Assembly: GCF_032444005.1 (NCBI RefSeq)
Contig: NC_091287.1
Location: forward strand, 559,798,001-559,862,000
DNA length: 64,000 nucleotides
Direction of reading: 5' to 3'
Origin: Ranitomeya imitator
Lineage: Eukaryota
The notes below the pieces were generated by a model. The model saw nothing but the letters and a program-made list of their open reading frames with translations. It ran no database searches and was not told where the DNA came from. The stretch's first letter is position 1. Every line of letters starts with the position of its first letter. Of the stretch, positions 13,685 to 43,647 are shown piece by piece. The position numbers were made by a program, and so were the translations under genes.

Positions 13685-13724
<40 letters not shown>

Positions 13725-13728
<4 letters not shown>

Positions 13729-14190
13729 CGAGTATGAAGAAAGGAGCGCACTACCTGGACGTTCGCTGCGGGTGAACTTTATTGCAAAAGCATAAAAGAC
13801 ATCTTCACGACCGGGGGTGCTGTGAAAGGAGTGCGGCAAAGCTAGACGACGGCCGTTTCGCGCCCGACCGGCGCTTCAACGGGTCAATGTCACATTGACC
13901 CGTTGAAGAGCCGGTCGGGCGCGAAACGGCCATCGTCTAGCTTTGCCGCACTCCTTTCACAGCACCCCCGGTCGTGAAGATGTCTTTTATGCTTTTGCAA
14001 TAAAGTTCACCCGCAGCGAACGTCCAGGTAGTGCGCTCCTTTCTTCATACTCGTTATTCACTTGTGGCTGCTTTCCGTGGAGTCTCGCACCCAGGACTGA
14101 GCTTTTCCTCCAAGACACAGGTGAGCGGTTCCCACAGTATCCTTTGGCGGTGGTGCCGCCCGGCTGTTTTCTCTTTGTTTGCATATATAT
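13725..14190 (+). mobile_element. Penelope-like element (PLE) terminal fragment with an inverted 5' arm
   Basis: 166-bp inverted arms; hammerhead-shaped motif ...GAAACGGCC(G/A)TCGTC; AATAAA at 13999-14004 followed by GGTAGTGCG. No RT or GIY-YIG coding sequence is present, so the family call is inferred from this architecture. Confidence 0.6.
13845..13885 (-). ncRNA. Putative minimal type I hammerhead-like RNA motif, variant core
   Basis: Minus strand GAC CCGTTGAA GCGCC-GGTCG-GGCGC GAAAC-GGCC-GTC GTC; a mirror copy on + at 13897-13937 carries two substitutions. Confidence 0.5.
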
Positions 14191-14206
14191 ACTGTATATA
14201 TATATA

Positions 14207-15909
14207 TTAGCTATTGAACCCGTTCTACGCCCGGGTGGCGAGCATTTATATTGGTATATGGTCTCCATCCTGGTATGTGCTGCTCGATCCTGCGTCCCCA
14301 TCCTGTCATGTGCTGCTCCATCCTGGGCCCCATTCTGTCATGTGCTGCTCCCATCCTGCGCCCCCGTTCTGTCATGTGCTGCTGCATCCTGCACCCCCAT
14401 CCTGTCATGTGCTGCTCCCATCCTGCGCCCCCGTTCTGTCATGTGCTGCTCCATCCTGCGCCCCCATCCTGACATGTGCTGCACCCATCCTGCGCCCCCA
14501 TTCTGTCATGTGCTGCTCCCATCCTGCGCCCCCATTCTATCATGTGCTGCTCCCATCCTGCGCCCCCGTTCTGTCATGTGCTGCTCCCATCCTGCGCCCC
14601 CGTTCTGTCATGTGCTGCTTCCATCCTGCACCCCCGATCTGTCATGTGCTGCTCCCATCCTGCGCCCCGTTCTGTCATGTGCTGCTCCCATCCTGCGCCC
14701 CCATTCTGTCATTTGCTGCTCCCATTCTGCGCCCCCATTCGGTCATGTGCTGCTCCCATCCTGCGCCCCCGTTCTGTCATGTGCTGCTCCATCCTGAGCC
14801 CCCATCCTGACATGTGCTGCACCCATCCTGCGCCCCCATTCTGTCATTTGCTGCTCCCATTCTGCGCCCCCATTCGGTCATGTGCTGCTCCCATCCTGCG
14901 CCCCCGTTCTGTCATGTGCTGCTGCCATCCTGCACCCCCGTTCTGTCATGTGCTGCCCTATTCTGTCATGTGCTGCTCCCATCCTGCGCCACCGTTCTTT
15001 AATTTGCTGCTCCCATCCATATGCCCCATACGCTGCTCCATAATATGCTCCATAGTATATGCCCCGTATCAGGTGGCGTAAGTAACAAATAGCTGTGGCA
15101 TGAAGTGCCACAGCCTCATGCCACAGCAATTTGTTACTTGCGCCACCTGATTCCTTTCCGCCGCCATTTTCTTGGTCCTCCTGCTGGCGGAATCGGCGCC
15201 TGCGCAGTCCGTGCTTTCCGGCACCATTTTTTTGAAGACACACTGCAGTGTGTCTTCAAGAAAATGGCGCCGGAAAGCGAGGACAGCGCAGGCGCCAATT
15301 CCGGCAGCAGGACCAAGAAAATGGCGGCGGAAAGGAATCAGGTGGCGTAAGTAACAAATTGCTGTGACATAAAGTGCCACAGCTTCATGCCACAGCAATT
15401 TGCTACTTACGACATTCCTTTCCGCCCATTTTCTTCATCCTCCTGCTGCAGGAATCGGCGCCTGCGCAGTCCGTGCTTTCCAGCGCCATTTTCTTGAATG
15501 CACACTTCAGTGCGCAGGCGCCGATTCCGGCAGCAGGACAAAGAAAATCGCGGCGGAAAGGAATCAGGTGGCATAAGTAACAAATTGCTGTGGCATGAAA
15601 AGCTTGCAGTGTGTCTTCAAGAAAATGGCGCCGGAAAGCGCGGACTGTGCAGGCGCCGATTCCGGCAGCAGGAGGACGAAGAAATGGGCAGAAAGGAATG
15701 GCGTAAGTAACAAATTGCTGTGGCATGAAGTGCCACAGCATAATCGGAGCGCAAATATGTGCACGGTGTCCCCCTGCTCCCGACCCCCTGCTCCCGGCAG
15801 TCCGCGCCTTCCGGCGCCATTTTTTTTCCTGACACTCTATAATGTAACGCTAGGAGCGTCGCGCCTGCGCAGTCTATAAAGGCTTCGTACAGAGTAACAC
15901 TCCCAGCGT

Positions 15910-15920
<11 letters not shown>
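14207..15920 (-). mobile_element. Non-autonomous Helitron-like element with an internal minisatellite
   Basis: Minus-strand 3' end has hairpin ACCCG-N9-CGGGT and ends CTAA|T (fits CTRR); the 5' end merges into (TA)n near 15920, so the TC terminus is not resolved. Confidence 0.55.
14270..15060. repeat. ~31-34 bp minisatellite (CTGTCATGTGCTGCTCCCATCCTGCGCCCCC.TT)n
   Basis: Direct periodicity; it generates the spurious Cys/His/Pro-rich ORFs in the track. Confidence 0.9.
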
Positions 15921-15948
<28 letters not shown>

Positions 15949-16239
15949 CAGTATATGTCATTGAGACACATATATATATATATATACAGTGGGGCAAAAA
16001 AGTATTTAGTCAGTCAGCAATAGTGCAAGTTCCACCACTTAAAAAGATGAGAGGCGTCTGTAATTTGCATCATAGGTAGACCTCAACTATGGGAGACAAA
16101 CTGAGAAAAAAAAATACAGAAAATCACATTGTCTGTTTTTTTAACATTTTATTTGCATATTATGGTGGAAAATAAGTATTTGGTCAGAAACAAACAATCA
16201 AGATTTCTGGCTCTCACAGACCTGTAACTTCTTCTTTAA

Positions 16240-16966
16240 AGGCCCCTTCACATTTAGCGACGCTGCAGCGATACCGACAACGATCCGAATCGCTGCAGCG
16301 TCGCTGTTTGGTCGCTGGAGAGCTGTCACACAGACCGCTCTCCAGCGACCAACGATGCCGGTAACCAGGGTAAACATCGGGTAACTAAGCGCAGGGCCGC
16401 GCTTAGTAACCCGATGTTTACCCTGGTTACCATGCTAAAAGTAAAAAAAAAACAAACAGTACATACTTACCTACAGCCGTCTGTCCTCCAGCGCTGCGCT
16501 CTGCTTCTCTGCTCTCCTCCTGTACTGTCTGGGAGCCGGAAAGCAGAGCAGTGACGTCACCGCTCTGCTTTCCGGCTCACAGCCAGTACAGGAAGAGTGC
16601 AGAGCACAGCGCTGGAGGACAGACAGCGTTAGGTAAGTATGTACTGTTTGTTTTTTTTTACTTTTAGCATGGTAACCAGGGTAAACATCGGGTTACTAAG
16701 CGCGGCCCTGCGCTTAGTTACCCGATGTTTACCCTGGTTACCAGTGAAGACATCGCTGGATCGGTGTCACACACGCCGATCCAGCGATGTCTCCAGGGAG
16801 TCCAGCGACGAAATAAAGTTCTGGACTTTATTCAGCGACCAACGATCTCCCAGCAGGGGCCTGATCGTTGGTCGCTGTCACACATAACGATTTCATTAAC
16901 GATATCGTTGTTACGTCACAAATAGCAACGATATCGTTAACAATATCGTTATGTGTGAAGGTACCT
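16240..16966. mobile_element. MITE with TAA TSD (PIF/Harbinger-like) inside Tc1-B
   Basis: Ends AGGCCCCTTCACA / TGTGAAGGTACCT; TAA at 16237-16239 and 16967-16969; two internal ~70-bp palindromes (GGTAACCAGGGTAAACATCGGG...CCCGATGTTTACCCTGGTTACC). Confidence 0.85.
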
Positions 16967-17083
16967 TAAGAGTCTCCTCTTTCCTCCACTCATTACCTGT
17001 AGTAATGGCACCTGTTTAAACTTGTTATCAGTATAAAAAGACACCTGTGCACACCCTCAAACAGTCTGACTCCAAACTCCACT

Positions 17084-18106
17084 ATGGTGAAGACCAAAGA
17101 GCTGTCAAAGGACACCAGAAACAAAACTGTAGCCCTGCACCAGGCTGGGAAGACTGAATCTGCAATAGCCAACCAGCTTGGAGTGAAGAAATCAACAGTG
17201 GGAGCAATAATTAGAAAATGGAAGACATACAAGACCACTGATAATCTCCCTCGAGCTGGGGCTCCACGCAAAATCCCACCTCGTGGGGTCAGAATGATCA
17301 CAAGAACGGTGAGCAAAAATCCCAGAACCACGCGGGGGGACCTAGTGAATGAACTGCAGAGAGCTGGGACCAATGTAATAAGGCCTACCATAAGTAACAC
17401 ACTACGCCACCATGGACTCAGATCCTGCAGTGCCAGACGTGTCCCACTGCTTAAGCCAGTACATGTCCGGGCCCGTCTGAAATTTGCTAGAGAGCATTTG
17501 GATGATCCAGAGGAGTTTTGGGAGAATGTCCTATGGTCTGATGAAACCAAACTGGAACTGTTTGGTAGAAACACAACTTGTCGTGTTTGGAGGAAAAAGA
17601 ATACTGAGTTGCATCCATCAAATACCATACCTACTGTAAAGCATGGTGGTGGAAACATCATGCTTTGGGGCTGTTTCTCTGCAAAGGGGCCAGGACGACT
17701 GATCCGGGTACATGAAAGAATGAATGGGGCCATGTATCGTGACATTTTGAGTGCAAACCTCCTTCCATCAGCAAGGGCATTGAAGATGAAACGTGGCTGG
17801 GTCTTTTAACATGACAATGATCCAAAGCACACCGCCAGGGCAACGAAGGAGTGGCTTCGTAAGAAGCATTTCAAGGTCCTGTAGTGGCCTAGCCAGTCTC
17901 CAGATCTCAACCCTATAGAAAACCTTTGGAGGGAGTTGAAAGTCCGCGTTGCCAAGCGAAAAGCCAAAAACATCACTGCTCTAGAGGAGATCTGCATGGA
18001 GGAATGGGCCAACATACCAACAATAGTGTGTGGCAACCTTGTGAAGACTTACAGAAAACGTTTGACCTCTGTCATTGCCAACAAAGGATATATTACAAAG
18101 TATTGA
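17084..18106 (+). pseudogene. Tc1-B transposase with two nonsense codons
   Basis: [10 protein letters not shown]..., [17 protein letters not shown]; TAA at 17807-17809 (CAA in the Tc1-C copy) and TAG near 17882 (GAG in Tc1-C). Confidence 0.92.
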
Positions 18107-18319
18107 GATTAAATTTTGTTTCTGACCAATACTTATTTTCCACCATAATATGCAAATAAATTGTTAAAAAAAAGAGACAATGTGATTTTCTGGATTTTTT
18201 TTCTCAGTTTATCTCCCATAGTTGAGGTCTACCTATGATGTAAATTACAGACGCCTCTCATCTTTTTAAGTGGTGGCACTATTGCTGACTGACTAAATAC
18301 TTTTTTGCCCCACTGTATG

Positions 18320-20105
18320 TATATATATTTATATTTACTTCAGCGCGATACAGCAGAACAGCCGGTAATTCAATTGCCGGCTTTGCTATCTCCTTCCTAA
18401 ACCCGACATGATATGAGACATGGTTTACATACAGTAAACCATCTCATATCCCCATTTTTTTTGCATATTCCACACTACTAATGTTAGTAGTGTGTATGTG
18501 GAAAATTTGGGCGCTGTAGCTATTAAATTTAAGGGTTAAATCGCGGAAAAAATTGGCATGGGCTCCTGCGCAATTTTCTCCGCCATAGTGGTAAAGCCAG
18601 TGACTGAGGGCAGATATTAATAGCCTAGAGAGGGACCATAGATATTGCCCCCCCCCCCCGGCTAAAAACATCTGCCCCCAGCCACCCCAGAAAAGGCACA
18701 TCTGGAAGATGCGCCTATTCTGGCACTTGGCCACTCTCTTCCCATTCCTGTGTAGCGGTGGGATATGGGGTAATGAAGGGTTAATGTCACCTTGCTATTG
18801 TAAGGTGACATTAAGCCAGATTAATAATGGAGAGGTGTCAATTATGACACCTCTCCATTATTAATCCAATTGTATGAAAGAGTTAAAAAACACACACACA
18901 TTATTACAAAGTCTTTTAATGAAATAAACACACAGGTTGTTGTAATATTTTATTATCCTGGTAATCCACCTGAAGACCCTCGCTCTGTAACAAAGGAAAA
19001 ATAAAAAAACAACAATATACATACCTTCCGATGATCTGTCACGTCCCACGCTGTAAATCCATCTGAAGTGGTTAAATTATTTTACAGGCAGGAGCTCTGC
19101 TATAATGCAGCTGTGCTTGTGGCTGTAAAACCCCGGGGAATGAATGGAATGTAGGTCAATGACCTGTAGTTACCTTCATTCATGGTGAGGCGCCCTCTGC
19201 TGGATGTCCTCATATGACCTCAAGCATGGGAAAATATTCTGAAAAGTTCCCAGGCTCGAGTTCATATGAGGACATCCAGCAGAGGGCGCCTCACCGCGAA
19301 TGAAGGTAACTACAGGTCATTGACCTACTTTCCATTCATTCACTGGGGTTTTACTGGCATTATAGCAGAGCTCCTGCCTGTAAAATAATTTAACCCCATC
19401 AGATGGATTTACATCGTGGGACATATCGACGGAAGGATTGAGATATTGTTGGTTTATTATTTTTAATTTGTTACAGGTCAAGGGTCTTCAGGTGGATTAC
19501 CAGGATAATATAATATTACAACAACCTGTGGGTTTATATCATTAAAATACTTTGCAATACTGTGTGTGTTTTTTAACCATTTCATGCTATTGGATTAATA
19601 ATGGATAGGTGTCATAATTGACGCCTCTCCATTATTAATCTGGCTTAATGTCACCTTACAATAGCAAGGTGATATTAACCCTTCATTACCCCATATCCCA
19701 CCGCTACACGGGAATGGGAAGAGAGTGGCCAAGTGCCAGAATAGGCGCATCTTCCAGATGTGCCTTTTCTGGGGTGGCTGGGGGCAGATGTTTTTAGCCA
19801 GGGGGGCCAATAACCATGGACCCTCTCCAGGCTAATAATATCTGCCCTCAGTCACTGGCTTTGCTACTCTGGCGGAGAAAATTGTGTGGGAGCCCACGCC
19901 AATTTTTTCCGCGATTTAACCCTTAAATTTAATAGCTACAGCGCCCAAATTATCCACATACACACTACTAACATTAGTAGTGTGGAATATGCAAAAAAAG
20001 GGGGATATGAGATGGTTTACTGTATGTATTAGGAAGGAGAAATGAAAAGCCGGCAATTGAATTACCGGCTGTTCTGCTATATCGCGCTGAAATAAATATA
20101 AATAT
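18320..20105. repeat. ~1.8-kb imperfect fold-back (long inverted repeat) inside hAT MITE B
   Basis: Left ...CAGCGCGATACAGCAGAACAGCCGGTAATTCAATTGCCGG mirrors right CCGGCAATTGAATTACCGGCTGTTCTGCTATATCGCGCTG; centre near 19240. Confidence 0.88.
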
Positions 20106-21839
20106 ATAGAGATTTCCCATTGACTTGCATTGGGTTTTGTGTTTCGGCCGATCCCCGACCCGGCTTTTCAAGATAATTGGCCGATTTCACTCGACTCAAC
20201 TTTTGAGAAAGTCGGGTTTCGCGAAACCCGACTCGACCTCAAAAAAGGAAAAGTCGCTCAACCCTACATGTGGGGATTCCCTAACAAACAGGCAATTCCA
20301 GCATCTGTTCAGGTTGTCTAACAGCCGCAAATTATGCAGCTGCGGTGACTCAAACATAATCTACGAGCACGCCCAAAATACTCGGAGACCACCCGAGCAT
20401 GCTCGGAAAACCCGAGTAACGAGCACACCTGCTCATCGCTAGAGATCATCTTCCACTTGCTTATCTGTTCACAATGACAGTAATTTTGACTTGGGGTGCC
20501 CAAACTTTTACATGTAATGTGTTGTGCCTAGTGATGAACCTAAAAGGAGCAGTCAGGGACCGTAGAATGAGTGCTGCTCTGCAGAATGCGCAATATCTGC
20601 AGTCGGATATTATTGAATTGTAAAACAATCTTAAGCGAGGGGCTTTTCTGAATGGATTAACATCTCGGCTGATCATTACGATGGACCATCCTTGGGTGGC
20701 TTGACGTTTGGGACCCTATCCATTAGCAGCACGCGGGGGCAGAGCGCGTCAGTAAGAAAGAGCACTGTGATACCATCACAGATCAGGCTCTACTGTTCTA
20801 ACTTCTATGGTCCTTGGATGTCAATTTTCCGAGGGTCCGACCATGTTGTTGCGACTTTTACGGTCCTCAGCCATCTCCTTTGTTTGCCCCATCCTCGCTG
20901 CTGCTCAGAAAGCTCCAGTGTATCACTGAGACGTCCAGAGACGTTTGTTTAGAAGGTCACTGATTCCTCGCGTCGTCCTTTCAATAATGCAGTAACTTCC
21001 CGATGTCTCTATCTGGTCTTATGACGATACATGAATTAAACATCTGTTCCCCGCATGGAAATTGTCTAAGTGCTTTTTGTGTTTTTTTGTGTTTTTTTTT
21101 TCCTTTCACCTGGTGGTTTTTGGTGCATTTAAACTTTGATGCATGAATACTCTAACAAATTGGTGGAGATGTACAGGCGGCAGAAGATCGTGTCGGAACA
21201 AGGGTCGGATAAAACAAGAATATGTTCTTCTGAGTTTGTGTGAAATGAGCTGACTAAGGAGAAACGTGCGGGGGGTGGATGGGCTCTCGGAGGAGACGAC
21301 TTCCGTCTCGAACGGCTCGGAAAATGAGAAGAAGGAAGAAAAACCTAAATACGACAATGGCCTCGTAACCAAGAGTGCACCATGCATCAGCCGGCAGATG
21401 TCCGGTAGAGGGAGGCCTGACCAAACATTCTCCGACCTATGTTTTTGAAATATAGACCCCCAGTCCACAACACCAGATGTTTTATCCTAAATTTGGATGA
21501 GAACAGCTGAAAATGCAAAAACATCGTCAACGATAGGTCCAATCTGTAGTCAAAAGAGCACTGAAATCAAAGGGTGAATGATGGACATTTTCGAAGATGC
21601 AGAGCTCAGGAGTAGCCACAATAGAATATAGAATATATGAGTTTCAACTTTTGTATTGAAGAACTGAACTAAATTCACTTTTTGATGACATTCTAATTTT
21701 GTGAGAAGCACTTATGTATAATTTAATCTTAAATTTCATCAGAAACGCAGAAAATTTCTAAAGGGTCAAATTGAAATAATCACATCAGTATTTTCTGAAA
21801 ATACAATTCTTCTGGGGGTCAGTGTTCCCCAATATTTTT

Positions 21840-24830
21840 GGAGAACTGTTTTCAGTTATTCTGTGGTAAGTGCATCCCTGTCTTTTGGGGTAAGTGTTCC
21901 AAATATTCTAGGGCGAGCGCTTTCAGTACTTTCTGGGCTAGTGCTTCACATTCTTCTGGAGTGAGTGCTTACCGTTCTTCTGGGCGAACAAGCGTTTCCT
22001 GTTCTTCTGGGGTGAAAGCTTCCCATTCTTCTGGGGTGAGCAGTTCCTGTTCTGCTGTCACGAGCCCTTTCCGTTCATCTGGTGTGAGCACTTCCCATTA
22101 TTCTGCAGCAAGCACTTTCAGTTCTTCTGAAGCGAGCGCTTTCAGCTCTGCTAGGCGAGCACTTCCCATTCTCCTGGGGCGAGCACTTCAAGTTCTTCTA
22201 GGACTGAGTTCTTCTTATTCTTCTAGACCAAATGCTTCACATTCTGTGGCAAGCGTTTCCCACTCTTATAAGGTGGGTGCTTCTCATTCTTCTGAGGTTG
22301 AGTGCTTCCCATTCTTTAGGACCAAATGCTTCACATTTTTCTGGGGCAAATACTTCCTGTTCTTCTGGTCCGAGCACTTGCCATTTTCCTGATGTGAGCT
22401 CTTCCAGTTCATCTGAGAAGAGTGCTTTCAGTTGTTCTAGATCAAGCACATCCCATTCTTCTGAGGGTGAATGCTTCCTCTTCTTCTGGGTCAAGTGCTT
22501 CCTGTTCTTCTGGGGAGGGTGCTTCCTGCTCTTCTTTGGTCAAGCTTTCCCCAATATTTTTGGAAGAGTACTTTCAGTTCTTCTGGGAATACCTTCTTTA
22601 AGGGGCGAATGTTGACCCCTATTCTAGGATGAGCGCTTTCAGTTCTTCTGAGCCAAGCTCTTCCCATTTTTCAGGGCTTCCTGTTCTTCTGGAGTTAGTG
22701 CCTGCCGTTCTTCTTAAAAGATTACTTCTGGTACTCCTAGGGCAAGCACTTTCAGTTGTTCTGGAGCTAATATTTCAATGTTTTTCTGGACAGGGCATGA
22801 AGCGCCCCCAGACGCAGGGCCGCGGGTTACTCGGTACCGGTCCTCTCTGTCTCGGTGCTGTGGTTGTCACGGTGGCTGGAGCCGGCCTGTGACCCTGCTA
22901 AGGGGCGTCCATTAAACGGGGTGATGAAAGTTAGTCAAGGGTTCGTGACGCCACCTGTGATCTTCGGTCAGGGTGACTGACGCTGCTTGGGGGTCCGCTG
23001 GGGTGATGGAATGGCAGCTAGAAGGTATACCTTCCCACAGGTGAAGTATATCCCCAGGGCTTCCCAGTAGTGTAGGTGGCGATGATGTGTGGCGCAGTTA
23101 ATAACGAGGACGCAGGGTTGCAGTCTCTTTACCTTTTACTGAAGACTTCGGGATCCGCAATCCAGAGCACTGCTAACACGGCTGGCTGAGTCCAGCCGGT
23201 CTGAAGGCACATCCAGAGTTCTCTTTGCAGGTGGAAATCAGTGCCTACCAACTAGCGCCTGTGTGTTGTAGTCCTTCCCTGCTGAGCATTCGGGATAGTC
23301 CTCACAACTTTCGTGTTCGTTCTTTCTCTTCTCCGTCCCCCAAGTTTATCTGGCTAGGACGCACCCGTATGACAGGTAGGCTCGAAGCTATTCTGGGACC
23401 ATAGGGACGCCCCTCTCCAACTTTGCCCCCTATGTCTGCTTAGGTGATGTATGGTAGACAGCCAACCTAAAATCAACTGCCCTGCCGCTGTTTGAAGTAA
23501 TGCTTGAAGTCTGTTACTTCCTCGGCGTTCCGGCCACCGGCTACGCGCCTCAGTAGGATGTTGCCGATCTCGGGGCACGACTCCTACTGGATATCTCCTT
23601 GTGCTGCGATTTCGTTTCTCACTTCTCCACAATATCCTTCGCTTCGTGTCCTTCCTTAGGATGCCGCCGCAAGGTAGTGCAGGCGCGGCTCCGTACATTC
23701 TGTCCTTTCTGCTAGGTACCTGCCAGGAACCCACCCCTGACAGGTCCTCCCTGGAGCTCTCCCAGGCTGCGTTCTGTTCTAACTTCTTATCCAACCCCCA
23801 GTTTTACCAAAGTGTGAGGAGTGGCCTAATACATAGTGACTTTTGCTCCCCCTGGTGGCCGGAGTGTGAAGTGTAATGTGTGACTGTGATACCTGGTCAG
23901 GTGAACTCCTTTAGTGCAATCAGACATAACATCACTCCCCTTAGTGGCAGAGCGACATTACTGCAACGGCCAGGACTCTGGGGCGCTGCAGGCAAATCCT
24001 ATTATTCTGGGCTGACAGCTTCCCTATATTCTTGGGTGAGAGCTTCCCGATCTTCTGCAGCAAGAGCTTCCCTTTCTTCTGGGGCGAGAGCTTCCCTTTC
24101 GTCTTGGGTGAGAGCTTCCGGATCTTCTGCGGCAAGAGCTTCCCTTTGTTCTGGGGTGAGAGCTTCCCTTTCTTCTTGGGTGAGAGCTTCCCGATCTTCT
24201 GTGGCGTGAGCTTCCCTTTCTTCTTGGGTGAGAGCTTCCCGATCTTCTTGGGTGAGAGCTTCCCGATCTTCTGCGGCAAGAGCTTCCCTTTCTTCCGGGG
24301 CGAGAGCTTCCTTTTCTTCTTGGGAGAGAGCTTCCCGATCTTCTACGGCAAGAGCTTCCCTTTGTTCTTGGGTGAGAGCTTCCCTTTCTTCTTGGGTGAG
24401 AGCTTCCCGATCTTCTGCGGCATGAGCTTCCCTTTGTTCTGGGGTGAGAGCTTCCCTTTCTTCTTGGGTGAGAGCTTCCCGATCTTCTGCGGCATGAGCT
24501 TCCCTTTCTTCTTGGGTGAGAGCTTCCCGATCTTCTTGGGTGAGAGCTTCCATTCGTTCTGGGGTCAGAGCTTCCCTTTCTTCTTGGGTGAGAGCTTCCC
24601 TTTCTTTTTGGGTGAGAGCTTCCCGATCTTCTTGGGTGAGAGCTTCCATTTGTTCTGGGGTCAGAGCTTCCCTTTCTTCTTGGGTGAGAGCTTCTCATTC
24701 TTCTTGGGTAAGAGCTTCCCGATCTTCTGCTGCAAGAGCTTCCTGATCTTCAGGGCCTAGCACTTCATATTCTTTCGGACAAGCGCTTACCATTCTTCTA
24801 GGACAAGTGCTTCCATTTTTCTAGGCTGAG
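21840..24830 (-). repeat. Degenerate 24-bp (8-codon) repeat, E-A-L-x-x-E-E-R-like on the minus strand, interrupted by a solo LTR
   Basis: ORF 24002..24649 - (EALTQEEREALTPE...); the same period continues, more decayed, at 21840-22797. Confidence 0.75.
22798..23990. mobile_element. Solo LTR (1193 bp)
   Basis: TGAAGCGCCCC...GGGGCGCTGCA (inverted termini); 4-bp TSD GGCA; shares motifs, in opposite orientation, with the solo LTR at 12363-13211. Confidence 0.9.
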
Positions 24831-29880: not shown

Positions 29881-29959
29881 TTTTCAAATCAGCATCGCTC
29901 TCAGCGTGCAGACGGCAGATCGGCGCAGTCCTGCCCCCTCCGTCCTCACCGGTATGTGC

Positions 29960-30505: not shown

Positions 30506-30817
30506 TCGTCCTTCTGCTATGACACAAATCTTCTCTGCTGCAATTAGAAGTGATGGACAATTTGCCACTGACTGATCCAGAATCACTGTCCCGGCGGAGA
30601 TGTGACCGCCGCTTTCTGCCTAATTATTTCTTCATTTTTTGTTAAATGATTCAAGGAGAAGCAGATGATGATTATCCTCCATGTTGATGTTCTGCCGGAA
30701 AGATTTATGGGCAAATCAGAAAGAAAAAAAAGATAAGTCTGGAATAGAAGCTGCACATGGTGACGCTAACGAGCCGCTGAACGATGGGATTATGAGGAGG
30801 AAAACGGCGACATATAA

Positions 30818-32310: not shown

Positions 32311-32949
32311 GGAGCACAAGAATACACGCGTAGAATGAAACAATGTATCATCTGACGCCCGGCACCATAAGTAACATATTATAATCAGAGATCAATCAAT
32401 GTGTCGTAATTTAGGAAATGCACTGAATCTGGTGAATTTGAATAATTTGCATAAATGTCGATTTACGTCAATCAACAAAATGCCACCATTTTACATAAAG
32501 CAGAACATTGCCAACGAAGGCTCACATGACTTCAGGCGCGACTTCCCCATCGTAATGCATTACATCACAGCTATCTCCTCACATCAGGAGCGAATAATGT
32601 AGCCAGTATAAAATCCGGGGCAGGGAATGCAGCAGCCGTTCTAGGGTGAATCTGGATAGTGACAAGACGTCTCAGAAATAGACGTAGGAAGAGGAAGGCA
32701 TAAAACACCAAATAATCATTACAGATAGTGTGTGACAGCGCAGCAGTGAAGAACCGTTACCATCCGGTCAACGATAGTCAGGTGTAGTGAGAACACTTGG
32801 ACATTAGTAAGGCAGCATGTTATAGAAAGTGAGCACACTAGGTAAGGTGGATCCACTAAGCCCAAAGTCTGCGTGGATACTTGGGTGTCAGTACAGCAGG
32901 CGGGTATTTCATGTTGATACAGATAGCAGAGTTACTAGAGGAGAACTAA

Positions 32950-33640
32950 AAGTCTTAATGGCGTCCTGTAAGCTGCAAACGGACAGGAGACGTCCTGGAA
33001 GCCGGTAGTGGACATGAAAAGGCAAACTGAAAGTCATTAAAGGGGTACTGGAAACCACAAGCAGACAGGAGATGCCCTGGAAACTGCATGTGTACATGAA
33101 AAGGCAAACTGAAAGCCTTAAAGGGGTACTGGAAACCACAAGCAGACAGGAGATGCCCTAGAAACTGCATGTGTACATGAAAAGGCAAACTGAAGGTTTT
33201 GAAGTGGTCCTGAAAGCCACAAGCAGACAGGAGATGCCCTGGAAACTGTGTGTGTACATTTAAAGGCAAACTGAAGGTTTTGAAGTGGTCCTGAAAGCCA
33301 CAAGCAGACAGGAGATGCCCTGGAAACTGTGTGTGTACATGTAAAGGCAAACTGAAGGTTTTGAAGTGGTCCTGAAAGCCGCAAGCAGACAGGAGACATC
33401 TTGGATGTTGTAGGTGGACACATAGAGGCAAACTAAAAGTCTTAAAGGGGTACTGGTAGCCACAAGCAGATAGGAGACATCGTGGAAGCTGCATGCTCAC
33501 AAGTAGAAACAAACGGAAAGTCTTAAAGTTGTCCTGGAACCCACAAACGGACAGGAGACCTCTTGGATGTTGCAGGTGAACATGTAGAGGCAAACTGAAG
33601 ATCTTAAAGGGGTCCTGGAAGCCAAAGACAGGTAGCAGAC
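32950..33640. repeat. 81-bp degenerate tandem repeat, about 8 units
   Basis: GGCAAACT recurs at 33021, 33103, 33184, 33265, 33346 and 33427. Confidence 0.85.
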
Positions 33641-35559
33641 AAAACTTCAGAGTAAAAAAAAAGAAAGTCTAAATACTATGGAAGCTGCAGGTGTCTAGGG
33701 GACGTCCTGACACCTGCCGGACATGCAGCAGAGATCTTAGATTACCGGGAACAGGTAGCAGACAGATCTCCAGAATAACTAGAAAGTATGAATACCATGG
33801 AAGCCGCAGCCAAAAAGGCGACGTCCTAAAGACCTTTATTTTTTCTTTTTCTATGATTTCTACACGACCCTTCTATTATTTTGAGTTAATTATTGATTAT
33901 ATTCCTGATTTCTGCTCCACGTTGGTGCGGTGAGTCACTTACGCCATGGTCCATTAGGAGCGGGGAGGGTGGTCTGCCATGTCTCTATCCCTGCAGACGT
34001 CAGCCCGGCCGGTGAGATTGATGGGAGGTTGCGGTGTCCCTCGGAAAGTAAATACATGGAGCCTAATGAATGAGATATATCCTGTCCACTCCTGTCCCAG
34101 ATAAGTATTTAACAGCCGGTATTGGATTTTTGTGGTATCTTTCAGTAACTGGTGCATTATGACCATTAATGGATTTTTGAAGCTTGATTGATTTTTCATT
34201 AATTTGGTAAAAATCTTTCTCATCTCCCATATAATTCTGTCTTAAAACGCTGGCGGTGACAGCTCGATAAGTCATACGTCTCATAATGCAGAACGCGCCA
34301 TCAATCTCCGGCAGCTCCCCGATTATCCCGGGCCCGGCGCACCCATCATTTTTCACTCTGCGCTCTGATGAAAGTAAACACTGAATTATTAACACACTTT
34401 GACTTGGGCATCGCAGATGGATTTATGGCGGACATTACGCCGGGGTCCTGTGATTAGCTTACCTGTCCTCCCTGCCTTCCTGTAGGTTAATGTACTCCCA
34501 CGATATTTCATAATATTGGATAAGACCGGTCAAAGCAAAATGTGACACCCCCCCCCCCCACCACACACCAGGAAAGGAAAAAGAAAAATATATAAAAATT
34601 AAAACAAAAATTCACAATTTACGTATAATGATTATTAAACATTTCAAGTATAATAATGAAATCACAAAATGTGTTTCCAAACCAAAAGAAAATAAACTTG
34701 AGAAAATGTGAAAAAATATATATATATACAGTGGGGCAAAAAAGTATTTAGTCAGTCAGCAATAGTGCAAGTTCCACCACTTAAAAAGATGAGAGGCGTC
34801 TGTAATTTACATCATAGGTAGACCTCAACTATGGGAGACAAACTGAGAAAAAAAAATCCAGAAAATCACATTGTCTGTTTTTTTATCATTTTATTTGCAT
34901 ATTATGGTGGAAAATAAGTATTTGGTCAGAAACAAACAATCAAGATTTCTGACTCTCACAGACCTGTAACTTCTTCTTTAACCCCTTTACCCCCAAGGGT
35001 GGTTTGCACGTTAATGACCGGTCCAATTTTTACAATTCTGACCACTGTCCCTTTATGAGGTTATAACTCCGAAACGCTTCAACGGATCCTGGTGATTCTG
35101 ACACTGTTTTCTCGTGACATATTGTACTTCATGATAGTGGTAAAATTTCTTTGATAGTACCTGCGTTTATTTGTGAAAAAAACGGAAATTTGGCGAAAAT
35201 TTTGAAAATTTCGCAATTTTCAAACTTTGAATTTTTATGCAATTAAATCACAGAGATATGTCACACAAAATACTTAATAAGTAACATTTCCCACATGTCT
35301 CCTTTACATCAGCATAATTTTGGAACCAATTTTTTTTTTTGTTAGGGAGTTATAAGGGTTAAAAGTTGACCAGCAATTTCTCATTTTTACAACACCATTT
35401 TTTTTGAGGGACCACGTCTCATTTGAAGTCATTTTCAGGGGTCTATATGATAGAAAATGCCCAAGTGTGACACCATTCTAAAAACTGCACCCATCAAGGT
35501 GCTCAAAACCACATTCAAGAAGTTTATTAACCCTTCAGGTGTTTAATAGGAATTTTTGG

Positions 35560-37810
35560 AATGTTTAAATAAAAATGAACATTTAACTTTTTTACACAAA
35601 AAATTTACTTCAGCTCCAATTTGTTTTATTTTACCAAGGGTAACAGGAGAAATTGGACCCAAAAAGTTGTTGTCCAATTTGTCCTGAGTACGCTGATACC
35701 CCATATGTGGCAGTAAACCACTGTTTGGGCGCATGGGAGAGCTCGGAAGGGAAGGAGCGCTATTTGACTTTTCAATGCAAAATTGACAGGAATTGAGATG
35801 GGACGCCATGTTGCGTTTGGAGAGCCACTGATGTGCCTAAACATTGAAACCCCCCACAAGTGACACCATTTTGGAAAGTAGACCCCCTAAGGAACTTATC
35901 TGGATGTGTGGTGAGCACTTTGACCCACCAAGTGATTCACAGAAGTTTATAATGCAGAACCGTAAAAATAAAAAATCATATTTTTTCACAAAAATTATAT
36001 TTTTGCCCCCAATTTTTTATTTTTCCAAGGGTAAGAGAAGAAATTGGACCTCAAAAGTTGTTGTCCAATTTGTCCTGAGTACGCTGATACCCCATATGTG
36101 GCAGTAAACCACTGTTTGGGCGCATGGGAGAGCTCGGAAGGGAAGGAGCGCAGTTTGACTTTTCAATGCAAAATTGACAGAAATTGAGATGGGACGCCAT
36201 GTTGCGTTTGGAGAGCCACTGATGTGCCTAAACATTGAAACCCCCCACAAGTGACACCATTTTGGAAAGTAGACCCCCTAAGGAACTTATCTAGAGGTGT
36301 GGTAAGTACTTTGACCCACCAAGTGCTTCACAGAAGTTTATAATGCAGAACCGTAAAAATAAAAAAATCATATTTTTTCACAAAAATTATATTTTTGCCC
36401 CCAATTTTTTATTTTTCCAAGGGTAAGAGAAGAAATTGGACCTCAAAAGTTGTTGTCCAATTTGTCCCGAGTACGCTGATACCCCATATGTGGCAGTAAA
36501 CCACTGTTTGGGCGCATGGGAGAGCTCGGAAGGGAAGGAGCGCCGTTTGACTTTTCAATGCAAAATTGACAGGAATTGAGATGGGACGCCATGTTGCGTT
36601 TGGAGAGCCACTGATGTGCCTAAACATTGAAACCCCCCACAAGTGACACCATTTTGGAAAGTAGACCCCCTAAGGAACTTATCTGGATGTGTGGTGAGCA
36701 CTTTGACCCACCAAGGGCTTCACAGAAGTTTATAATGCAGAGCCATAAAAATAAAACAAAATTTTTTTCCCACAAAAATTATTTTTTAGCCCCCAGATTT
36801 GTATTTTCCCTAGGGTAACAGGAGAAATTGGACCCCAAAAGTTGTTGTCCAATTTGTCCTGAGTACGCTGATACCCCATATGTGGGGGGGAACCACCGTT
36901 TGGGCGCATGGGAGGGCTCGGAAGGGAAGGAGCGCCATTTGGAATGCAGACTTAGATGGAATGGTCTGCAGGCGTCACATTGCGTTTGCAGAGCCCCTAA
37001 TGTACCTAAACAGTAGAAACCCCCCACAAGTGACACCATTTTGGAAAGTAGACCCCCTAAGGAACTCATCTTGATGTGTTGTGAGAGCTTTGAACCCCCA
37101 AGTATTTCACTACAGTTTATAACGCAGAGCCATGCAAATAAAAAATATTTTTTTTTCCACAAAAATTATATTTTAGCCCCCAGTTTTGTATTTTTCCAAG
37201 GTTAGCAGGAGAAATTGGACCCTAAATGTTGTTGTCCAATTTGTCCTGAGTACGCTGATACCCGATATGTGGGGGGGAACCACCGTTTGGGCGCATGGGA
37301 GGGCTCGGAAGGGAAGGAGCATCATTTGGAATGCAGACTTAGATGGATTGGTCTGCAGGCGTCACATTGCGTTTGCAGAGCCCCTAATGTACCTAAACAG
37401 TAGAAACCCCCCACAAGTGACCCCATATTGGAAACTAGACCCCTCAATGAACTTATCTAGATGTGTTGTGAGAACTTTGAACCCCCAAGTGTTTCACTAC
37501 AGTTTATAACGCAGAGCCGTGAAAATAAAAAATCTTTTTGTTTTCCCACAAAAATTATTTTTTAGCCCCCAGTTTTGTATTTTCCCAAGGGTAACAGGAG
37601 AAATTGGTCCACAAAAGTTGTTGTCCAATTTGTCCTGAGTACGCTGATACCCCATATGTTGGGGTAAACCCCTGTTTGGGCACACAGGAGAGCTCGGAAG
37701 GGAAGGAGCACTGTTTTACTTTTTCAACGCAGAATTGGCTGGAATTGAGATCGGACGCCATGTCATGTTTGGAGAGCCCCTGATGTGCCGAAACAGTGGA
37801 AACCCCCCAA
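35560..37810. repeat. Tandem array of ~390-bp units inside the piggyBac-like element
   Basis: AAATTGG anchor at 35650, 36041, 36433, 36825, 37212 and 37601. Confidence 0.9.
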
Positions 37811-37819
37811 TTATAACTG

Positions 37820-37972
37820 AAACCCTAATCTAAACACACCCCTAACCCTAATTCCAACGGTAACCCTAACCACACCTCTAACCCTGACACACCCCTAACC
37901 CTAATCCCAACCCTATTCCCAACTGTAAATGTAATCTAAACCCTAACCCTAACTTTAGCCCCAACCCTAACT
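37820..37972. repeat. Degenerate telomere-like (CCCTAA)n tract
   Basis: Multiple CCCTAA/CCCTAACCCTAA units with variants, running into the gap. Confidence 0.7.
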
Positions 37973-38236
37973 NNNNNNNNNNNNNNNNNNNNNNNNNNNN
38001 NNNNNNNNNNNNNNNNNNNNNNNNNNNNNNNNNNNNNNNNNNNNNNNNNNNNNNNNNNNNNNNNNNNNNNNNNNNNNNNNNNNNNNNNNNNNNNNNNNNN
38101 NNNNNNNNNNNNNNNNNNNNNNNNNNNNNNNNNNNNNNNNNNNNNNNNNNNNNNNNNNNNNNNNNNNNNNNNNNNNNNNNNNNNNNNNNNNNNNNNNNNN
38201 NNNNNNNNNNNNNNNNNNNNNNNNNNNNNNNNNNNN
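37973..38236. other. Assembly gap (264 N)
   Basis: Run of N. Confidence 1.
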
Positions 38237-39813
38237 TAAATACATTTTTTTTTATTTGTCCCTAACTAAGGGGGTGATGAAGGGGGGTTTGATTTACTTT
38301 TATAGCGAGTTTTTTAGCGGATTTTTATGATTGGCAGCCGTCACACACTGAAAGACCCTTTTTATTGCAAAAAATATTTTTTGCAATACCACATTTTGAG
38401 AGCTATAATTTTTCCATATTTTGGTCCACAGAGTCATGTGAGGTCTTGTTTTTTGCGGGACGAGTTGACGTTTTTATTGAAAACATTTTTGGGCACGTGA
38501 CATTTTTTGATCGCTTTTTATTCCGATTTTTGTGAGGAAGAATGACCAAAAGCCAGCTATTCATGAATTTCTATTGGGGGAGGCGTTTATACCGTTCCGC
38601 GTTTGGTAAAATTGATAAATCAGTTTTATTCTTCGGGTCAGTACGATTACAGCGATACCTTATTTATATCATTTTTTTATGGTTTGGCGCTTTTATACGA
38701 TAAAAACTATTTTACAGAAAAAATAATTATTTTTGCATCGCTTTATTCTCAGGACTATAACTTTTTTACTTTTTTGCTGATGATGCTGTATGGCAGCTCT
38801 TTTTTTGCGGGACAATATGACGCTTTCAGCGGTACCATGGTTATTTATATCTGTCCTTTTGATCACGTGTTATTCCACTTTTTGTTCGGCGGTATGATAA
38901 TAAAGCGTTGTTTTTTGCCTCGTTTTTTTTTTTTTTTTCTTACGGTGTTTACTGAAGGGGTTAACTAGTGGGACAGTTTTATAGGTCGGGTCGTTACGGA
39001 CGCGGCGATACTAAATATGTGTACTTTTATTGTTTTTTTTTTTTTATTTAGATGAAGAAATGTATTTATGGGAATAATATATATATTTTTTTTTCATTAT
39101 TTTGGAATATTTTTTTTTATTTTTTTTACACATTTGGAAAAATTTTTTTTTACTTTTTTACTTTGTCCCAGGGGGGGACATCACAGATCAGTGATCTGAC
39201 AGTTTGCACAGCACTCTGTCAGATCACTGATCTGACATGCAGCGCTGCAGGCTTCACAGTGCCTGCTCTGAGCAGGCTCTGTGAAGCCACCTCCCTCCCT
39301 GCAGGACCCGGATCCGCGGCCATCTTGGATCCGGGGCTGGAGGGAGCAGGGAGGGAGGTGAGACCCTCGCAGCAACGCGATCACATCGCGTTGCTCCGGG
39401 GGTCTCAGGGAAGCCCGCAGGGAGCCCCCTCCCTGCGCGGTGCTTCCCTGCACCGCCGGCACATCGCGATCATCTTTGATCGCGGTGTGCCAGGGGTTAA
39501 TGTGCCGGGGGCGGTCCGTGACCGCTCCTGGCAAATAGTGCCGGATGTCAGCTGCGATAAGCAGCTGACACCCGGCCGCGATCGGCCGCGCTCCCCCCGT
39601 GAGCGCGGCCGATCGGCTATGACGTACTATCCCGTCCAGGGTCAGATAAGCCCAGGGCACCTCGACGGGATAGTACGTCTAAGGTCACAGAGGGGTTAAG
39701 AGGCTCCTCTGTCCTCCACTCATTACCTGTAGTAATGGCACCTGTTTAAACTTGTTATCAGTATAAAAAGACACCTGTGCACACCCTCAAACAGTCTGAC
39801 TCCAAACTCCAGT

Positions 39814-40835
39814 ATGGTGAAGACCAAAGAGCTGTCAAAGGACACCAGAAACAAAATTGTAGCCCTGCACCAGGCTGGGAAGACTGAATCTGCAATAGCC
39901 AACCAGCTTGGAGTGAAGAAATCAACAGTGGGAGCAATAATTAGAAAATGGAAGACATACAAGACCACTGATAATCTCCCTCGATCTTGGCTCCACGCAA
40001 AATCCCACCCCGTGGGGTCAGAATGATCACAAGAACGGTGAGCAAAACTCCCAGAACCACGTGGGGGGACCTAGTGAATGAACTGCAGAGAGCTGGGACC
40101 AATGTAACAAGGCCTACCATAAGTAACACACTACGCCACCATGGACTCAGATCCTGCAGTGCCAGACGTGTCCCACTGCTTAAGCCAGTACATGTCCGGG
40201 CCCGTCTGAAGTTTGCTAGAGAGCATTTGGATGATCCAGAGGAGTTTTGGGAGAATGTCCTATGGTCTGATGAAACCAAACTGGAACTGTTTGGTAGAAA
40301 CACAACTTGTCGTGTTTGGAGGAAAAAGAATACTGAGTTGCATCCATCAAACACCATACCTACTGTAAAGCATGGTGGTGGAAACATCATGCTTTGGGGC
40401 TGTTTCTCTGCAAAGGGGCCAGGACGACTGATCCGGGTACATGAAAGAATGAATGGGGCCATGTATCGTGAGATTTTGAGTGCAAACCTCCTTCCATCAG
40501 CAAGGGCATTGAAGATGAAACGTGGCTGGGTCTTTCAACATGACAATGATCCAAAGCACACCGCCAGGGCAACGAAGGAGTGGCTTCGTAAGAAGCATTT
40601 CAAGGTCCTGGAGTGGCCTAGCCAGTCTCCAGATCTCAACCCTATAGAAAACCTTTGGAGGGAGTTGTAAGTCCGTGTTGCCAAGCGAAAAGCCAAAAAC
40701 ATCACTGCTCTAGAGGAGATCTGCATGGAGGAATGGGCCAACATACCAACAACAGTGTGTGGCAACCTTGTGAAGACTTACAGAAAACGTTTGACCTCTG
40801 TCATTGCCAACAAAGGATATATTACAAAGTATTGA
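39814..40835 (+). pseudogene. Tc1-C transposase (frameshift near 39985, stop at 40668-40670)
   Basis: ORF pieces 39814..40026 and 39987..40670; DD34E (HDNDPKH...DLNPIE). Confidence 0.92.
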
Positions 40836-41080
40836 GATGAAATTTTGTTTCTGACCAAATACTTATTTTCCACCATAATATGCAAATAAAATGTTAAAAA
40901 AACAGACAATGTGATTTTCTGGATTTTTTTTTCTCAGTTTGTCTCCCATAGTTGAGGTCTACCTATGATGTAAATTACAGACGCCTCTCATCTTTTTAAG
41001 TGGTGGAACTTGCACTATTGCTGACTGACTAAATACTTTTTTGCCCCACTGTGTATACAGTATATATATATATATATATA

Positions 41081-42629
41081 CAGTACAGACCAAAAGTTTG
41101 GACACACCTTCTCATTTAAAGATCTTTCTTTTAAAAAAAAAGTGTGAAACAACTGAAATTATGTCTTATATTCTAGGTTCTTCCAAGTAGCCACGTTTTG
41201 CTTTGATGACTGCTTTGCACACTCTTGGCATTCTCTTGATGAGATTCAAGAGGTAGTCACCGGGAATGGTTTTCACTTCACAGGTGTGCCCTGTCAGGTT
41301 TAATAAGTGGGATTTCTTGCCGTATAAATGGGGTTGGGATCATCAGTTGTGTTGAGCAGAAGTCTGGTGGATACACAGCTGATAGTCCTACTGAAGAGAC
41401 TGTTAGAATTTGTATTATGGCAAGAAAAAAGCATCTAAGTAAAGAAAAACGAGTGGCCATCATTACTTTAAGAAATGAAGGTCAGTCAGTCCGAAAAAAT
41501 GGGAAAACTTTGAAAGTGTCCCCAAGTGCGGTGGCAAAAACCATCAAGCGCTACAAAGAAACTGGCTCACATGAGGACCTCCCCAGGAAAGGAAGACCAA
41601 GAGTCACCTCTGCTTCTGAGGATAAGTTTATCCGAGTCACCAGCCTCAGAAATCGCAGGTTAACAGCAGCTCAGATTAGAGACCAGGTCAATGCCACACA
41701 GTTCTAGCAGCAGACACATCTCTACAACAACTGTTAAGAGGAGACTTTGTGCAGCAGGCCTTCATGGTAAAATAGCTGCTAGGAAACCACTGCTAAGGAC
41801 AGGTAACAAGCAGAAGAGACTTGTTTGGGCTAAAGAACGCAAGGAATGGACATTAGACCAGTGGAAATCTGTGCTTTGGTCTGATGAGTCCAAATTTGAG
41901 ATCTTTGGTTCCAACCACTGTGTCTTTGTGCGACACAGAAAAGGTGAACGGATGGACTCTACATGCCTGGTTCCCACCGTGAAGCATGGAGGAGGAGGTG
42001 TGATGGTGTGGGGGGCTTTGCTGGTGACACTGTTGGGGATTTATTCAAAATTGAAGGCATACTGAACCAGCATGGCTACCACAGCATCTTGCAGCGGCAT
42101 GCTATTCCATCCGGTTTGCATTTAGTTGGACCATCATTTATTTTTCAACAGGACAATGACCCCAAACACATCTCCAGGCTGTGTAAGGGCTATTTGACCA
42201 AGAAGGAGAGTGATGGGGTGCTACACCAGATGACCTGGCCTCCACAGTCACCAGACCTGAACCCAATCGAGATGGTTTGGGGTGAGCTGGACCGCAGAGT
42301 GAAGGCAAAAGGGCCAACAAGTGCTAAGCATCTCTGGGAACTCCTTCAAGATTGTTGGAAGACCATTCCCGGTGACTACCTCTTGAAGCTCATCAAGAGA
42401 ATGCCAAGAGTGTACAAAGCAGTCATCAAAGCAAAAGGTGGCTACTGTGAAGAACCTAGAATATAAGACATAATTTCAGTTGTTTCACACTTTTTTGTTA
42501 AGTATATAATTCCACATGTGTTAATTCATAGTTTTGATGCCTCCAGTGTGAATGTACAATTTTCATAGTCATGACAATACAGAAAAATCTTTAAATGAGA
42601 AGGTGTGTCCAAACTTTTGGTCTGTACTG
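41081..42629 (+). mobile_element. Tc1-like element 'Tc1-D' with DD38E spacing (Intruder-type), 1549 bp
   Basis: TIR CAGTACAGACCAAAAGTTTGGACACACCT / AGGTGTGTCCAAACTTTTGGTCTGTACTG, TA flanks; QQD-NDPKH...DLNPI-E has 38 residues between D and E. Confidence 0.9.
41417..42466 (+). pseudogene. Tc1-D transposase, broken into three ORF pieces
   Basis: Track ORFs 41417..41707, 41691..42065 (WSDESKFE) and 41963..42466. Confidence 0.9.
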
Positions 42630-42642
42630 TATATATATATAT

Positions 42643-42717
<75 letters not shown>
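42630..42717. repeat. (TA)n + (GATA)n microsatellite
   Basis: Direct. Confidence 0.95.
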
Positions 42718-42808
42718 CAGTCGTGCTCAAAAGTTTACATACCCTGGCAGAATTTTTGCTTTCTTGGCCTTTTTTTCAGAGAATATGAATGATAACACCA
42801 AAACTTTT
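42718..42808 (+). mobile_element. Truncated Tc1 left end (same family as 29733)
   Basis: TA|CAGTCGTGCTCAAAAGTTTACATACCCTGGCAG... Confidence 0.7.
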
Positions 42809-43094
42809 ATATATGTCTATAAAAAGAAATACTACATTAGTTTCAAAATTTCAATTGAGTAAAATGCTATTTAAGCAACCAAAATACTTCCAAAATTTAC
42901 ATAAGATAATTAAAAAAAAAATCCCAAAATAATTCAAAACTATTTCTGCATGACAAACATAAAGATTGGAACAGCACCAGGGCTCGCCTTCTGGTTCTAT
43001 GCCCCTTTGCTTATTTCACCGATATATACCAATTGCGTTTTCCAGATAAAGCTACTGGATACGGTGCTCTGCTCAATAAGTAACAGTAATCTTC

Positions 43095-43647
43095 ATATCT
43101 CATCAAAGGATAATAAAAGAAGCGGCACTCACCAGTTTGCTGAAAAAAGTGTCTTTAATGCAGCCTTAATCCATGCTTACAGGCTATTCAGACACGTTGC
43201 AGGTGATTGTGAGGGTGCGGGGAGTGAAGGAGGACGACGGCCGTTTCGTGCAATCAGCACTTTGACGGGTCCATGTGGGCTTAAACGACAAATTGGATAT
43301 GGCCGTATTTCTATAAAATTCTATAAATCTCATATAGTGTTGCAACAAGCATTTGAGTATTTTTACTGACAATGTTTAAATTATAAGTATTTGGCAAATG
43401 TATGAAAAAAAAAACAAAAAAAAAACATGTATGTCAGTAATTTACCTTGATGCGCATATTGCCTTTAAAAGGAAATGACATCATTTTACCCCCACATGGA
43501 CCCGTCGAAGTGCTGATTGCACGAAACGGCCGTCGTCCTCCTTCACTCCCCGCACCCTCACAATCACCTGCAACGTGTCTGAATTAAAGACACTTTTTTC
43601 AGCAAACTGGTGAGTGCCGCTTCTTTTATTATCCTTTGATGAGATAT
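43095..43647. mobile_element. Penelope-like inverted terminal fragments (second family)
   Basis: Arms 43095-43279 and 43491-43647 (the right arm lacks ~28 bp), 211-bp spacer; hammerhead-shaped motif in each arm; ATTAAA at 43583-43588 followed by GGTGAGTGCCG. Confidence 0.6.
43498..43538 (+). ncRNA. Putative minimal type I hammerhead-like RNA motif, variant core
   Basis: GGAC CCGTCGAA GTGC-TGATT-GCAC GAAAC-GGCC-GTC GTCC; the mirror copy on - at 43232-43272 has core CCGTCAAA. Confidence 0.5.

Follow-up and report, generated by a model that had tools for sequence, protein, structure and literature searches.

A U4C/A6U hammerhead derivative carried by a clade of Penelope-like elements in Ranitomeya imitator

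Textbooks count U4 and A6 among the invariant core bases of the hammerhead, the best-studied small ribozyme. The newt satellite-2 hammerheads described by Forster in 1988 reportedly act as double hammerheads, and De la Peña and Flores are said to have found, in 2001, a CChMVd hammerhead with an extra nucleotide between A9 and G10.1. The closest described relatives of the motif reported here are the minimal type I hammerheads of Penelope-like elements (PLEs) (Cervera & de la Peña 2014, PMC4209133). Natural variants of the core have also been described, namely the U3-A8 covariation, U4C in a viroid and A6C in phage Bcep176 (Perreault et al. 2011, PMC3088659). Here we analyse a hammerhead-shaped RNA motif that occurs in two families within a stretch of 64,000 nt of the Ranitomeya imitator genome (assembly GCF_032444005.1, contig NC_091287.1, positions 559,798,001 to 559,862,000 of the forward strand; hereafter, the window), together with its relatives in the 5.96 Gb of the genome that were searched.

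The motif is a real and selectively maintained hammerhead derivative, borne by PLEs, in which U4 is replaced by C and A6 by U. We give a probability of about 0.6 to the following reading: it is a lineage-specific derivative of the minimal type I hammerhead, located in the pseudo-long terminal repeat (pseudo-LTR) of a single clade of elements encoding a reverse transcriptase (RT) and a GIY-YIG domain, and its altered core cuts after GUH. The evidence consists of the structure of the motif, its covariation, its linkage to PLEs, its fixation throughout the clade and a pile-up of the 5' ends of genomic copies at G1.1.

Core sequence, fold and host elements of the motif

A pattern that fixes helix I, G10.1/C11.1 and GAAAC-GGCC-GUC-GUCC but leaves the eight core positions free (GGAC-N8-G…CGAAAC-GGCC-GUC-GUCC) had 2,460 matches in the genome and 0 in the reversed-pattern control. 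All 100 cores among the matches listed were CCGUNGAA or forms derived from it by CpG decay, and none was CUGANGA. Four core bases (C3, G5, G8 and A9) do not vary, essentially every copy has C at position 4 and U at position 6, and N7 is free, being U, C, A or G among the matches listed; the variant motif does not carry the ordinary C3-U4-G5-A6-N7-G8-A9 5' core strand. When canonical CUGANGA was joined to GAAACGGCC, only background was recovered (94 matches vs 64 in the control), whereas canonical hammerheads are abundant elsewhere in the same genome (30,620 matches vs ~390 in the control, with the retrozyme and PLE types pooled). The canonical matches split into retrozyme-type arrays, with periods of 353–384 bp, and the PLE minimal type, in which loop 3 is GCGC, GC or missing; the listed copies of the latter type have a helix I of the CCCC/GGGG type. 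Given that the canonical core remains at background in this context, yet canonical hammerheads are abundant elsewhere, the CCGU-core motif is, on sequence evidence, a distinct lineage and not the outcome of general decay.

Scanning with Rfam yielded no hammerhead match at the gathering score, and none at E ≤ 10 on the motif itself. Since it fails the strict consensus and all the models, the motif is not a plain member of the hammerhead class. For another search pattern, the reversed (uncomplemented) form CCGGCAAAG…AARYTGCC gave 5,750 matches, exceeding the real pattern and presumably representing another abundant repeat, and that search was not used for significance.

The fold was assessed in an alignment of 37 distinct copies, retrieved with patterns that leave helix I and the interior of stem II free. 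Paired cells make up 94.3% of the alignment, and 27 double-sided changes were counted, compared with 7.1±2.1 in shuffles, none of the 500 shuffles reaching 27. Compensatory changes affect three of the four stem II pairs and two of the four helix I pairs, and G10.1-C11.1 is invariant. Stem II alternates between GCGC/GCGC, GCAC/GUGC, GUGC/GCAC and GCGU/ACGC with mismatches nearly nil, and helix I between GGAC/GUCC, GAAC/GUUC and UGAC/GUCA, with G-U pairs tolerated in the sense strand. The three helices follow the type I layout, open at helix I, and helix III is made of 2 bp and a palindromic loop. GAAA is invariant, the A15.1-U16.1 pair is present in 37/37 copies and an extra base (A) is found between A9 and G10.1. 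Loop 3 is GGCC or, in several multi-copy families, GAUC, a double change that keeps the 8-nt palindrome A-C-G-N-N-C-G-U; it is therefore compensatory and bears the signature of an intermolecular (dimer) helix III. The minimum-energy fold of the family 2 dimer is a double hammerhead, and that of the monomer is a rod with CCGU paired to ACGG.

Position 17 was U in 64, A in 35 and G in 1 of the first 100 non-C copies listed, the A17 copies deriving from a few founder families; A17 occurs in several families and G17 in none. The triplet found most often is GUC (15 of the 19 copies retrieved without fixing position 17). The presence of U and A, together with the avoidance of G, matches the NUH rule of hammerheads. 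As a structural null, a metagenome scan for the motif returned 120 stretches in GC-rich DNA that all resemble chance matches and were rejected as true motifs; among chance matches, only 5 of 93 had at least four stem II pairs, and G17 was found in 24%.

Linkage to PLEs was found in 19 loci, with amino-acid identities to the reference of 41–100%, in which the motif is located 180–445 nt downstream of an open reading frame (ORF) for the RT and GIY-YIG endonuclease protein (RT-EN), on the same strand. The variant motif is strand-asymmetric, its orientation always being that of the ORF. Some copies have open frames of 830–885 aa without interruption, and at least one intact copy adjoins a variant motif. 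Regarding the window, positions 13725-14207 (family 1) are 98% identical, by blastn and tblastn, to the unit start of L037, a tandem element of 3,965 bp from another part of the genome; its three tandem units are identical across a 420-aa RT query. Family 2 shows 76–82% identity to L015/L016, which are RT-EN coding members of the variant-core clade. Pfam returned no match for the ORF fragments of the tandem element; the RT and GIY-YIG motifs of the L037 ORFs were identified by eye, with tblastn support, and RVT_1 and GIY-YIG domains are present in the database homologues.

In a maximum-likelihood tree of the C-terminal part of RT-EN, the elements with the variant motif form one clade (support 95/92), inside which two Ranitomeya proteins nest. 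Its sister is L083 (RT-EN 45% identical); L083 and L084 are Logan contigs of SRR5149406 and SRR5149511. About 60–110 nt from its 3' end, L083 carries GGCC-UUGACAAA-G…U-GAAAC-GGCC-GUA-GGCC, a hammerhead with a U3-A8 swap, ordinary U4 and A6, a G10.1-U11.1 wobble, the GGCC loop and GUA. Elements with canonical CUGA cores are placed further out, in rows that are few and on long branches, and the root is insecure.

Two short boxes are common to otherwise unalignable families, examples being window positions 43471-43480 and 43550-43558 and the elements L009, L018 and L027. The upstream box, (A)AATGAC(G/A)U, is TGACGT-like, lies ~26 nt 5' of helix I and is a possible promoter element. The downstream box, CCGCAC(C/U)C, is found 12–16 nt past the cleavage site and does not covary with stem II.

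Most of what the initial annotation had proposed from the window holds genome-wide. The helices, GAAA, the palindromic loop 3 and the GUH triplet bear out its hammerhead layout, and the genome-wide core listing agrees with its view of a maintained CCGUNGA(A) core. Neither canonical descriptors nor any Rfam hammerhead model finds the motif, as it had predicted for standard searches. Two of the checks it had suggested, covariation and linkage to GIY-YIG/RT ORFs, gave the covarying helices I and II and the 19 loci with the motif after an RT-EN ORF, in agreement with its proposed PLE association. Its count of support was too low, since it knew only two families, where there are thousands of copies and dozens of stem II families. 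The two were also considered unrelated, but both are near coding members of the one variant-core clade. Its remark that their flanks do not align is correct for most of the sequence but overlooks the two boxes in common.

5' ends of genomic copies and their interpretation

To locate 5' ends, we listed the genomic copies of an 18-nt anchor that begins 4 nt past the predicted point of cleavage, each with the preceding 17 nt. The L004/L018 family (anchor AAGCUCCAACACCGCACC) has 253 copies, mostly with an intact motif upstream. About 54 of its loci have a junction no more than 17 nt upstream of the anchor, and ~39 of these start exactly at G1.1 (…|GUCCAAGCUCC); 12 others start 1–5 nt downstream of G1.1, and the 13 positions upstream account for only 3. 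The chance of at least 39/54 falling on one pre-specified position of 17 is 4e-36. Some of the G1.1 starts follow unrelated flanks, usually ending in T, in agreement with the ATT-type target that has been reported for a PLE endonuclease, and the rest are fold-backs with the arm end at G1.1. In a second family, five ends were counted at G1.1, one at the base that follows and nine at an internal GAGCUC palindrome lying 4 nt downstream, with none upstream; of the three junction copies of family 1, one starts at G1.1. These 5' ends point to cleavage in vivo.

A separate and less sharp class of head-to-head junctions, to which both window loci belong, is located 0–13 nt upstream of helix I. Because the TGACGT-like box lies ~26 nt upstream in several families, we take this class to mark the probable transcription start. 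With junctions both at G1.1 and just upstream of helix I, cut as well as uncut RNAs appear to have served as templates and been copied into DNA. A minor second 5' end or fold-back centre was also observed in the middle of the loop 3 palindrome (GG|CC), with copies starting CCGUCGUC (G000:C4:606008342-606008395 and L037:2478-2512).

In the mechanism that we propose, two copies of the motif in a PLE transcript would pair via the palindromic A-C-GGCC-G-U (or A-C-GAUC-G-U), so that helix III forms between molecules and a double hammerhead results. Cleavage of the RNA after GUH would follow, and the 5' end produced at G1.1 would be copied into new insertions. The lineage would have fixed U4C and A6U, so that C3-C4-G5-U6-N7-G8-A9(+A) stands for C3-U4-G5-A6-N7-G8-A9. 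The motif with the altered core probably still cleaves at the canonical site, and we infer that the RNA's own altered core does the cutting, possibly helped by an element protein, as reported for an Anolis element. We also lean somewhat towards regarding C3-C4-G5-U6-N7-G8-A9 as a second natural hammerhead core, competent in vivo and fixed in an active retrotransposon clade. The initial annotation had left two options for the motif; the genomic 5'-end data favour its new catalytic-core variant over its non-cleaving signal.

Several points weigh against cleavage by the altered core. U4C ‘considerably decreases’ hammerhead activity, and A6C gives <0.1 per minute (PMC3088659); the minimal hammerheads of PLEs already cleave slowly in vitro (PMC4209133). 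Cleavage of an Anolis PLE needed protein, was dispensable for insertion in vitro and was accompanied by no RNA-seq ends (PMC11167929). In assembled contigs, which come from runs of uncertain type and cannot show ends, the motif sits uncut within longer contigs. The junctions were classed by eye from the listed matches, and some of the loci may be segmental duplicates; a PLE family with the canonical core, taken as a positive control for the 5' ends, yielded no rows. Finally, a sharp transcription start or a reverse-transcriptase stop may give ends at G1.1.

The main alternative, which is possible but in our judgement clearly the less likely course, is that the module has the shape of a hammerhead but is catalytically dead, its fold and palindromic dimerization being kept for another role, for instance in ribonucleoprotein assembly, in RNA pairing or in the way the PLE reverse transcriptase handles its template. 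The G1.1 ends would then arise from a sharp transcription start, from a reverse-transcriptase stop at the dimer helix III or from a host or element nuclease. The deleterious effect of U4 and A6 changes in tested hammerheads (PMC3088659) would suit a dead module, as would PLE insertion in vitro without cleavage and the lack of RNA-seq ends at the Anolis site (PMC11167929), and hammerhead-free PLE clades proliferate well (PMC8557442). As to a transcription start, the C17|G1.1 junction is a pyrimidine-purine step and hence a possible initiator; however, the fuzzier 5' ends 0–13 nt upstream of helix I look more like one. A stop at helix III is expected after C17, not after G1.1, and the pile-up falls to the nucleotide on the site predicted for a hammerhead. 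A dead module also does not lead one to expect that the remaining catalytic positions are fixed across the clade with N7 free and G17 avoided. The rod that is the minimum-energy fold of the monomer could suggest that U4C and A6U were selected for pairing CCGU with ACGG in cis. We rejected this explanation because the families with a GAUC loop keep CCGU despite the loss of one pair: the core is unchanged while the loop palindrome is maintained by a double change, so the cis rod is not the selected feature.

A signal at the DNA level is unlikely. The stem II hairpin and the ACGGCCGT palindrome would in that case act in the cDNA or target DNA, as a site for the GIY-YIG endonuclease or as a snap-back primer for the second strand. 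Both elements are also palindromes in DNA, and head-to-head fold-back junctions are frequent, and a few of them are centred on GG|CC of the loop palindrome. However, a DNA signal does not account for the strand asymmetry of the motif, always in the ORF sense, for unpaired segments that match the hammerhead core by position, including the free N7 and H17, or for the G-U pairs of helix I tolerated in the sense strand, and the reported preference of a PLE endonuclease is an ATT-type site (PMC11167929). Neutral decay of canonical hammerheads, or chance matching, is very improbable: CpG deamination does account for several minor forms (CUGU, CCAU and CCGUCAAA), but the control had 0 matches, chance matches lack the stems, the CpG within the core (C4-G5) is retained, and the CCGU core is fixed across RT-EN proteins down to 41% identity, beside intact ORFs. 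Cutting by heterodimers with canonical PLE hammerheads was considered as well and rejected by inference, since neither helix III (ACGGCCGU vs ACGCGCGU) nor helix I is complementary.

Motif copies in the window and neighbouring features

The four copies of the motif in the window (Table 1) are where the initial annotation had placed them, although its mirror copies are not identical to the intact ones, carrying two substitutions in family 1 and a change of G8 to A in family 2. The pattern CCGTYRAA..GAAACGGCC has four matches in the window vs 0.00 expected from 100 shuffles of the window. Family 1 forms a near-perfect palindrome of 333 bp (arms 13725-13890 and 13892-14057, 99% complementary), and family 2 an inverted repeat (arms 43095-43285 and 43485-43647) with a spacer of 199 nt. 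Both loci are short non-coding pseudo-LTR insertions of the ‘direct plus inverted’ kind, extending from a few nucleotides upstream of the motif to ~110–270 nt downstream. These extents fit the internal RT start downstream of the hammerhead reported for an Anolis PLE (PMC11167929).

Table 1. Motif copies, PLE fragments and assembly gap in the window
Feature	Positions	Strand	Sequence or identity	Remarks
Family 1 motif, intact	13845-13885	-	GAC CCGUUGAA GCGCC-GGUCG-GGCGC GAAAC GGCC GUC GUC	Predicted cleavage 13848 (C17) / 13847 (G1.1), - strand
Family 1 motif, mirror	13897-13937	+	GAGCC for GCGCC in stem II; AUC for GUC	C17 = 13934
Family 2 motif, intact	43498-43538	+	GGAC CCGUCGAA GUGC-UGAUU-GCAC GAAAC GGCC GUC GUCC	Predicted cleavage 43534 / 43535
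Family 2 motif, mirror	43232-43272	-	Reads CCGUCAAA	C17 = 43236
Family 1 inverted PLE pseudo-LTR copy, 5'-truncated	13725-13890	-	98.8% identity to L037 6414-6579	From ~5 nt upstream to ~120 nt downstream of motif; adjoins (TA)n microsatellite 13687-13728
Family 1 direct PLE copy	13891-14207	+	98% identity to L037 6413-6708	Stops at minisatellite start
Family 2 inverted copy	43048-43285	-	~79-82% identity to L015/L016 (RT-EN coding)	Ends 13 nt upstream of motif
Family 2 direct copy	43418-43647	+		~80 nt upstream of motif, including GAAATGAC box, and ~110 nt downstream
Assembly gap (N run)	37973-38236	.		Outside the feature; >5 kb from both loci, claims independent of continuity across it

A contig of run X1, the type of which was guessed as RNA, covers 43050-43273 with 12 differences, all T>C and listed for window positions 43129-43188. 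They resemble A-to-I hyper-editing in a transcript of the minus strand that folds through the inverted repeat of family 2, but may instead reflect a diverged copy. The minisatellite at 14214-15100, which starts right at the end of the family 1 PLE fragment, gives rise to long repetitive pseudo-ORFs (‘CHVLLPSCAP…’) in several frames. Two Tc1/mariner-like transposase ORFs are located at 17084-17809 and 39987-40670; the string CTGATGAAACCAAACTGG… occurs at both 17538 and 40267, so both ORFs are copies of one Tc1-like repeat.

Comparison with known hammerheads

A U4C+A6U core maintained by selection throughout a clade, with genomic footprints of precise processing at the canonical site, would widen the catalytic sequence space of the hammerhead and would provide structural and mechanistic studies with a double mutant of natural origin. 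If it is indeed a second natural core, thousands of functional hammerheads systematically escape consensus searches, and neither position 4 nor position 6 is essential by itself, the two being exchangeable together. Descriptor and Rfam searches would under-count ribozymes in large amphibian genomes. The data also bear on the open question of the role of PLE hammerheads, as insertion ends record both cleaved (G1.1) and uncleaved (just upstream of helix I) templates. A full-text string search found no description of the U4C+A6U combination or of a CCGUNGA-type core, the 2017 PLE-hammerhead literature lying outside its scope, so that an earlier mention is possible.

Among described systems, the motif shares most with the PLE minimal type I hammerheads (PMC4209133). 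Like them, it resides in the pseudo-LTR of elements with RT and GIY-YIG domains and has a short helix I, GAAAC, an unpaired base between A9 and G10.1, a conserved G10.1-C11.1 pair, a highly variable stem II with covariation, and a helix III of 2 bp with a palindromic loop, which implies action as a dimer. Pairs on opposite strands are frequent in both, and the tandem and inverted arrangement is likewise common to them, the variant motif being found in the 3,965-bp tandem array as well as in inverted copies. In contrast, the core is C-C-G-U-N-G-A in place of C-U-G-A-N-G-A, fixed clade-wide and missed by canonical descriptors and Rfam.

The extra A after A9 in CCGUNGA-A is a feature of the CChMVd type (cited in PMC4209133) that is also common to canonical PLE hammerheads, and it leaves the changes at positions 4 and 6 unexplained. 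The hammerheads of amphibian retrozymes and newt satellite-2 (PMC7229834; bioRxiv 10.64898/2026.07.22.740005) are likewise dimer-dependent type I forms related to PLE pseudo-LTRs; unlike the motif described here, they have the canonical CUGAUGA core and loop-loop contacts and occur in non-coding tandem repeats. The natural core variants (PMC3088659) resemble it in that the ‘invariant’ core tolerates rare changes, including those at positions 4 and 6 singly, and the sister element L083 provides an instance of the U3-A8 form. However, those variants involve a single change or a base-pair swap, are mostly isolated and have reduced activity, whereas in these PLEs two non-pairing positions have changed together and are fixed in thousands of copies.

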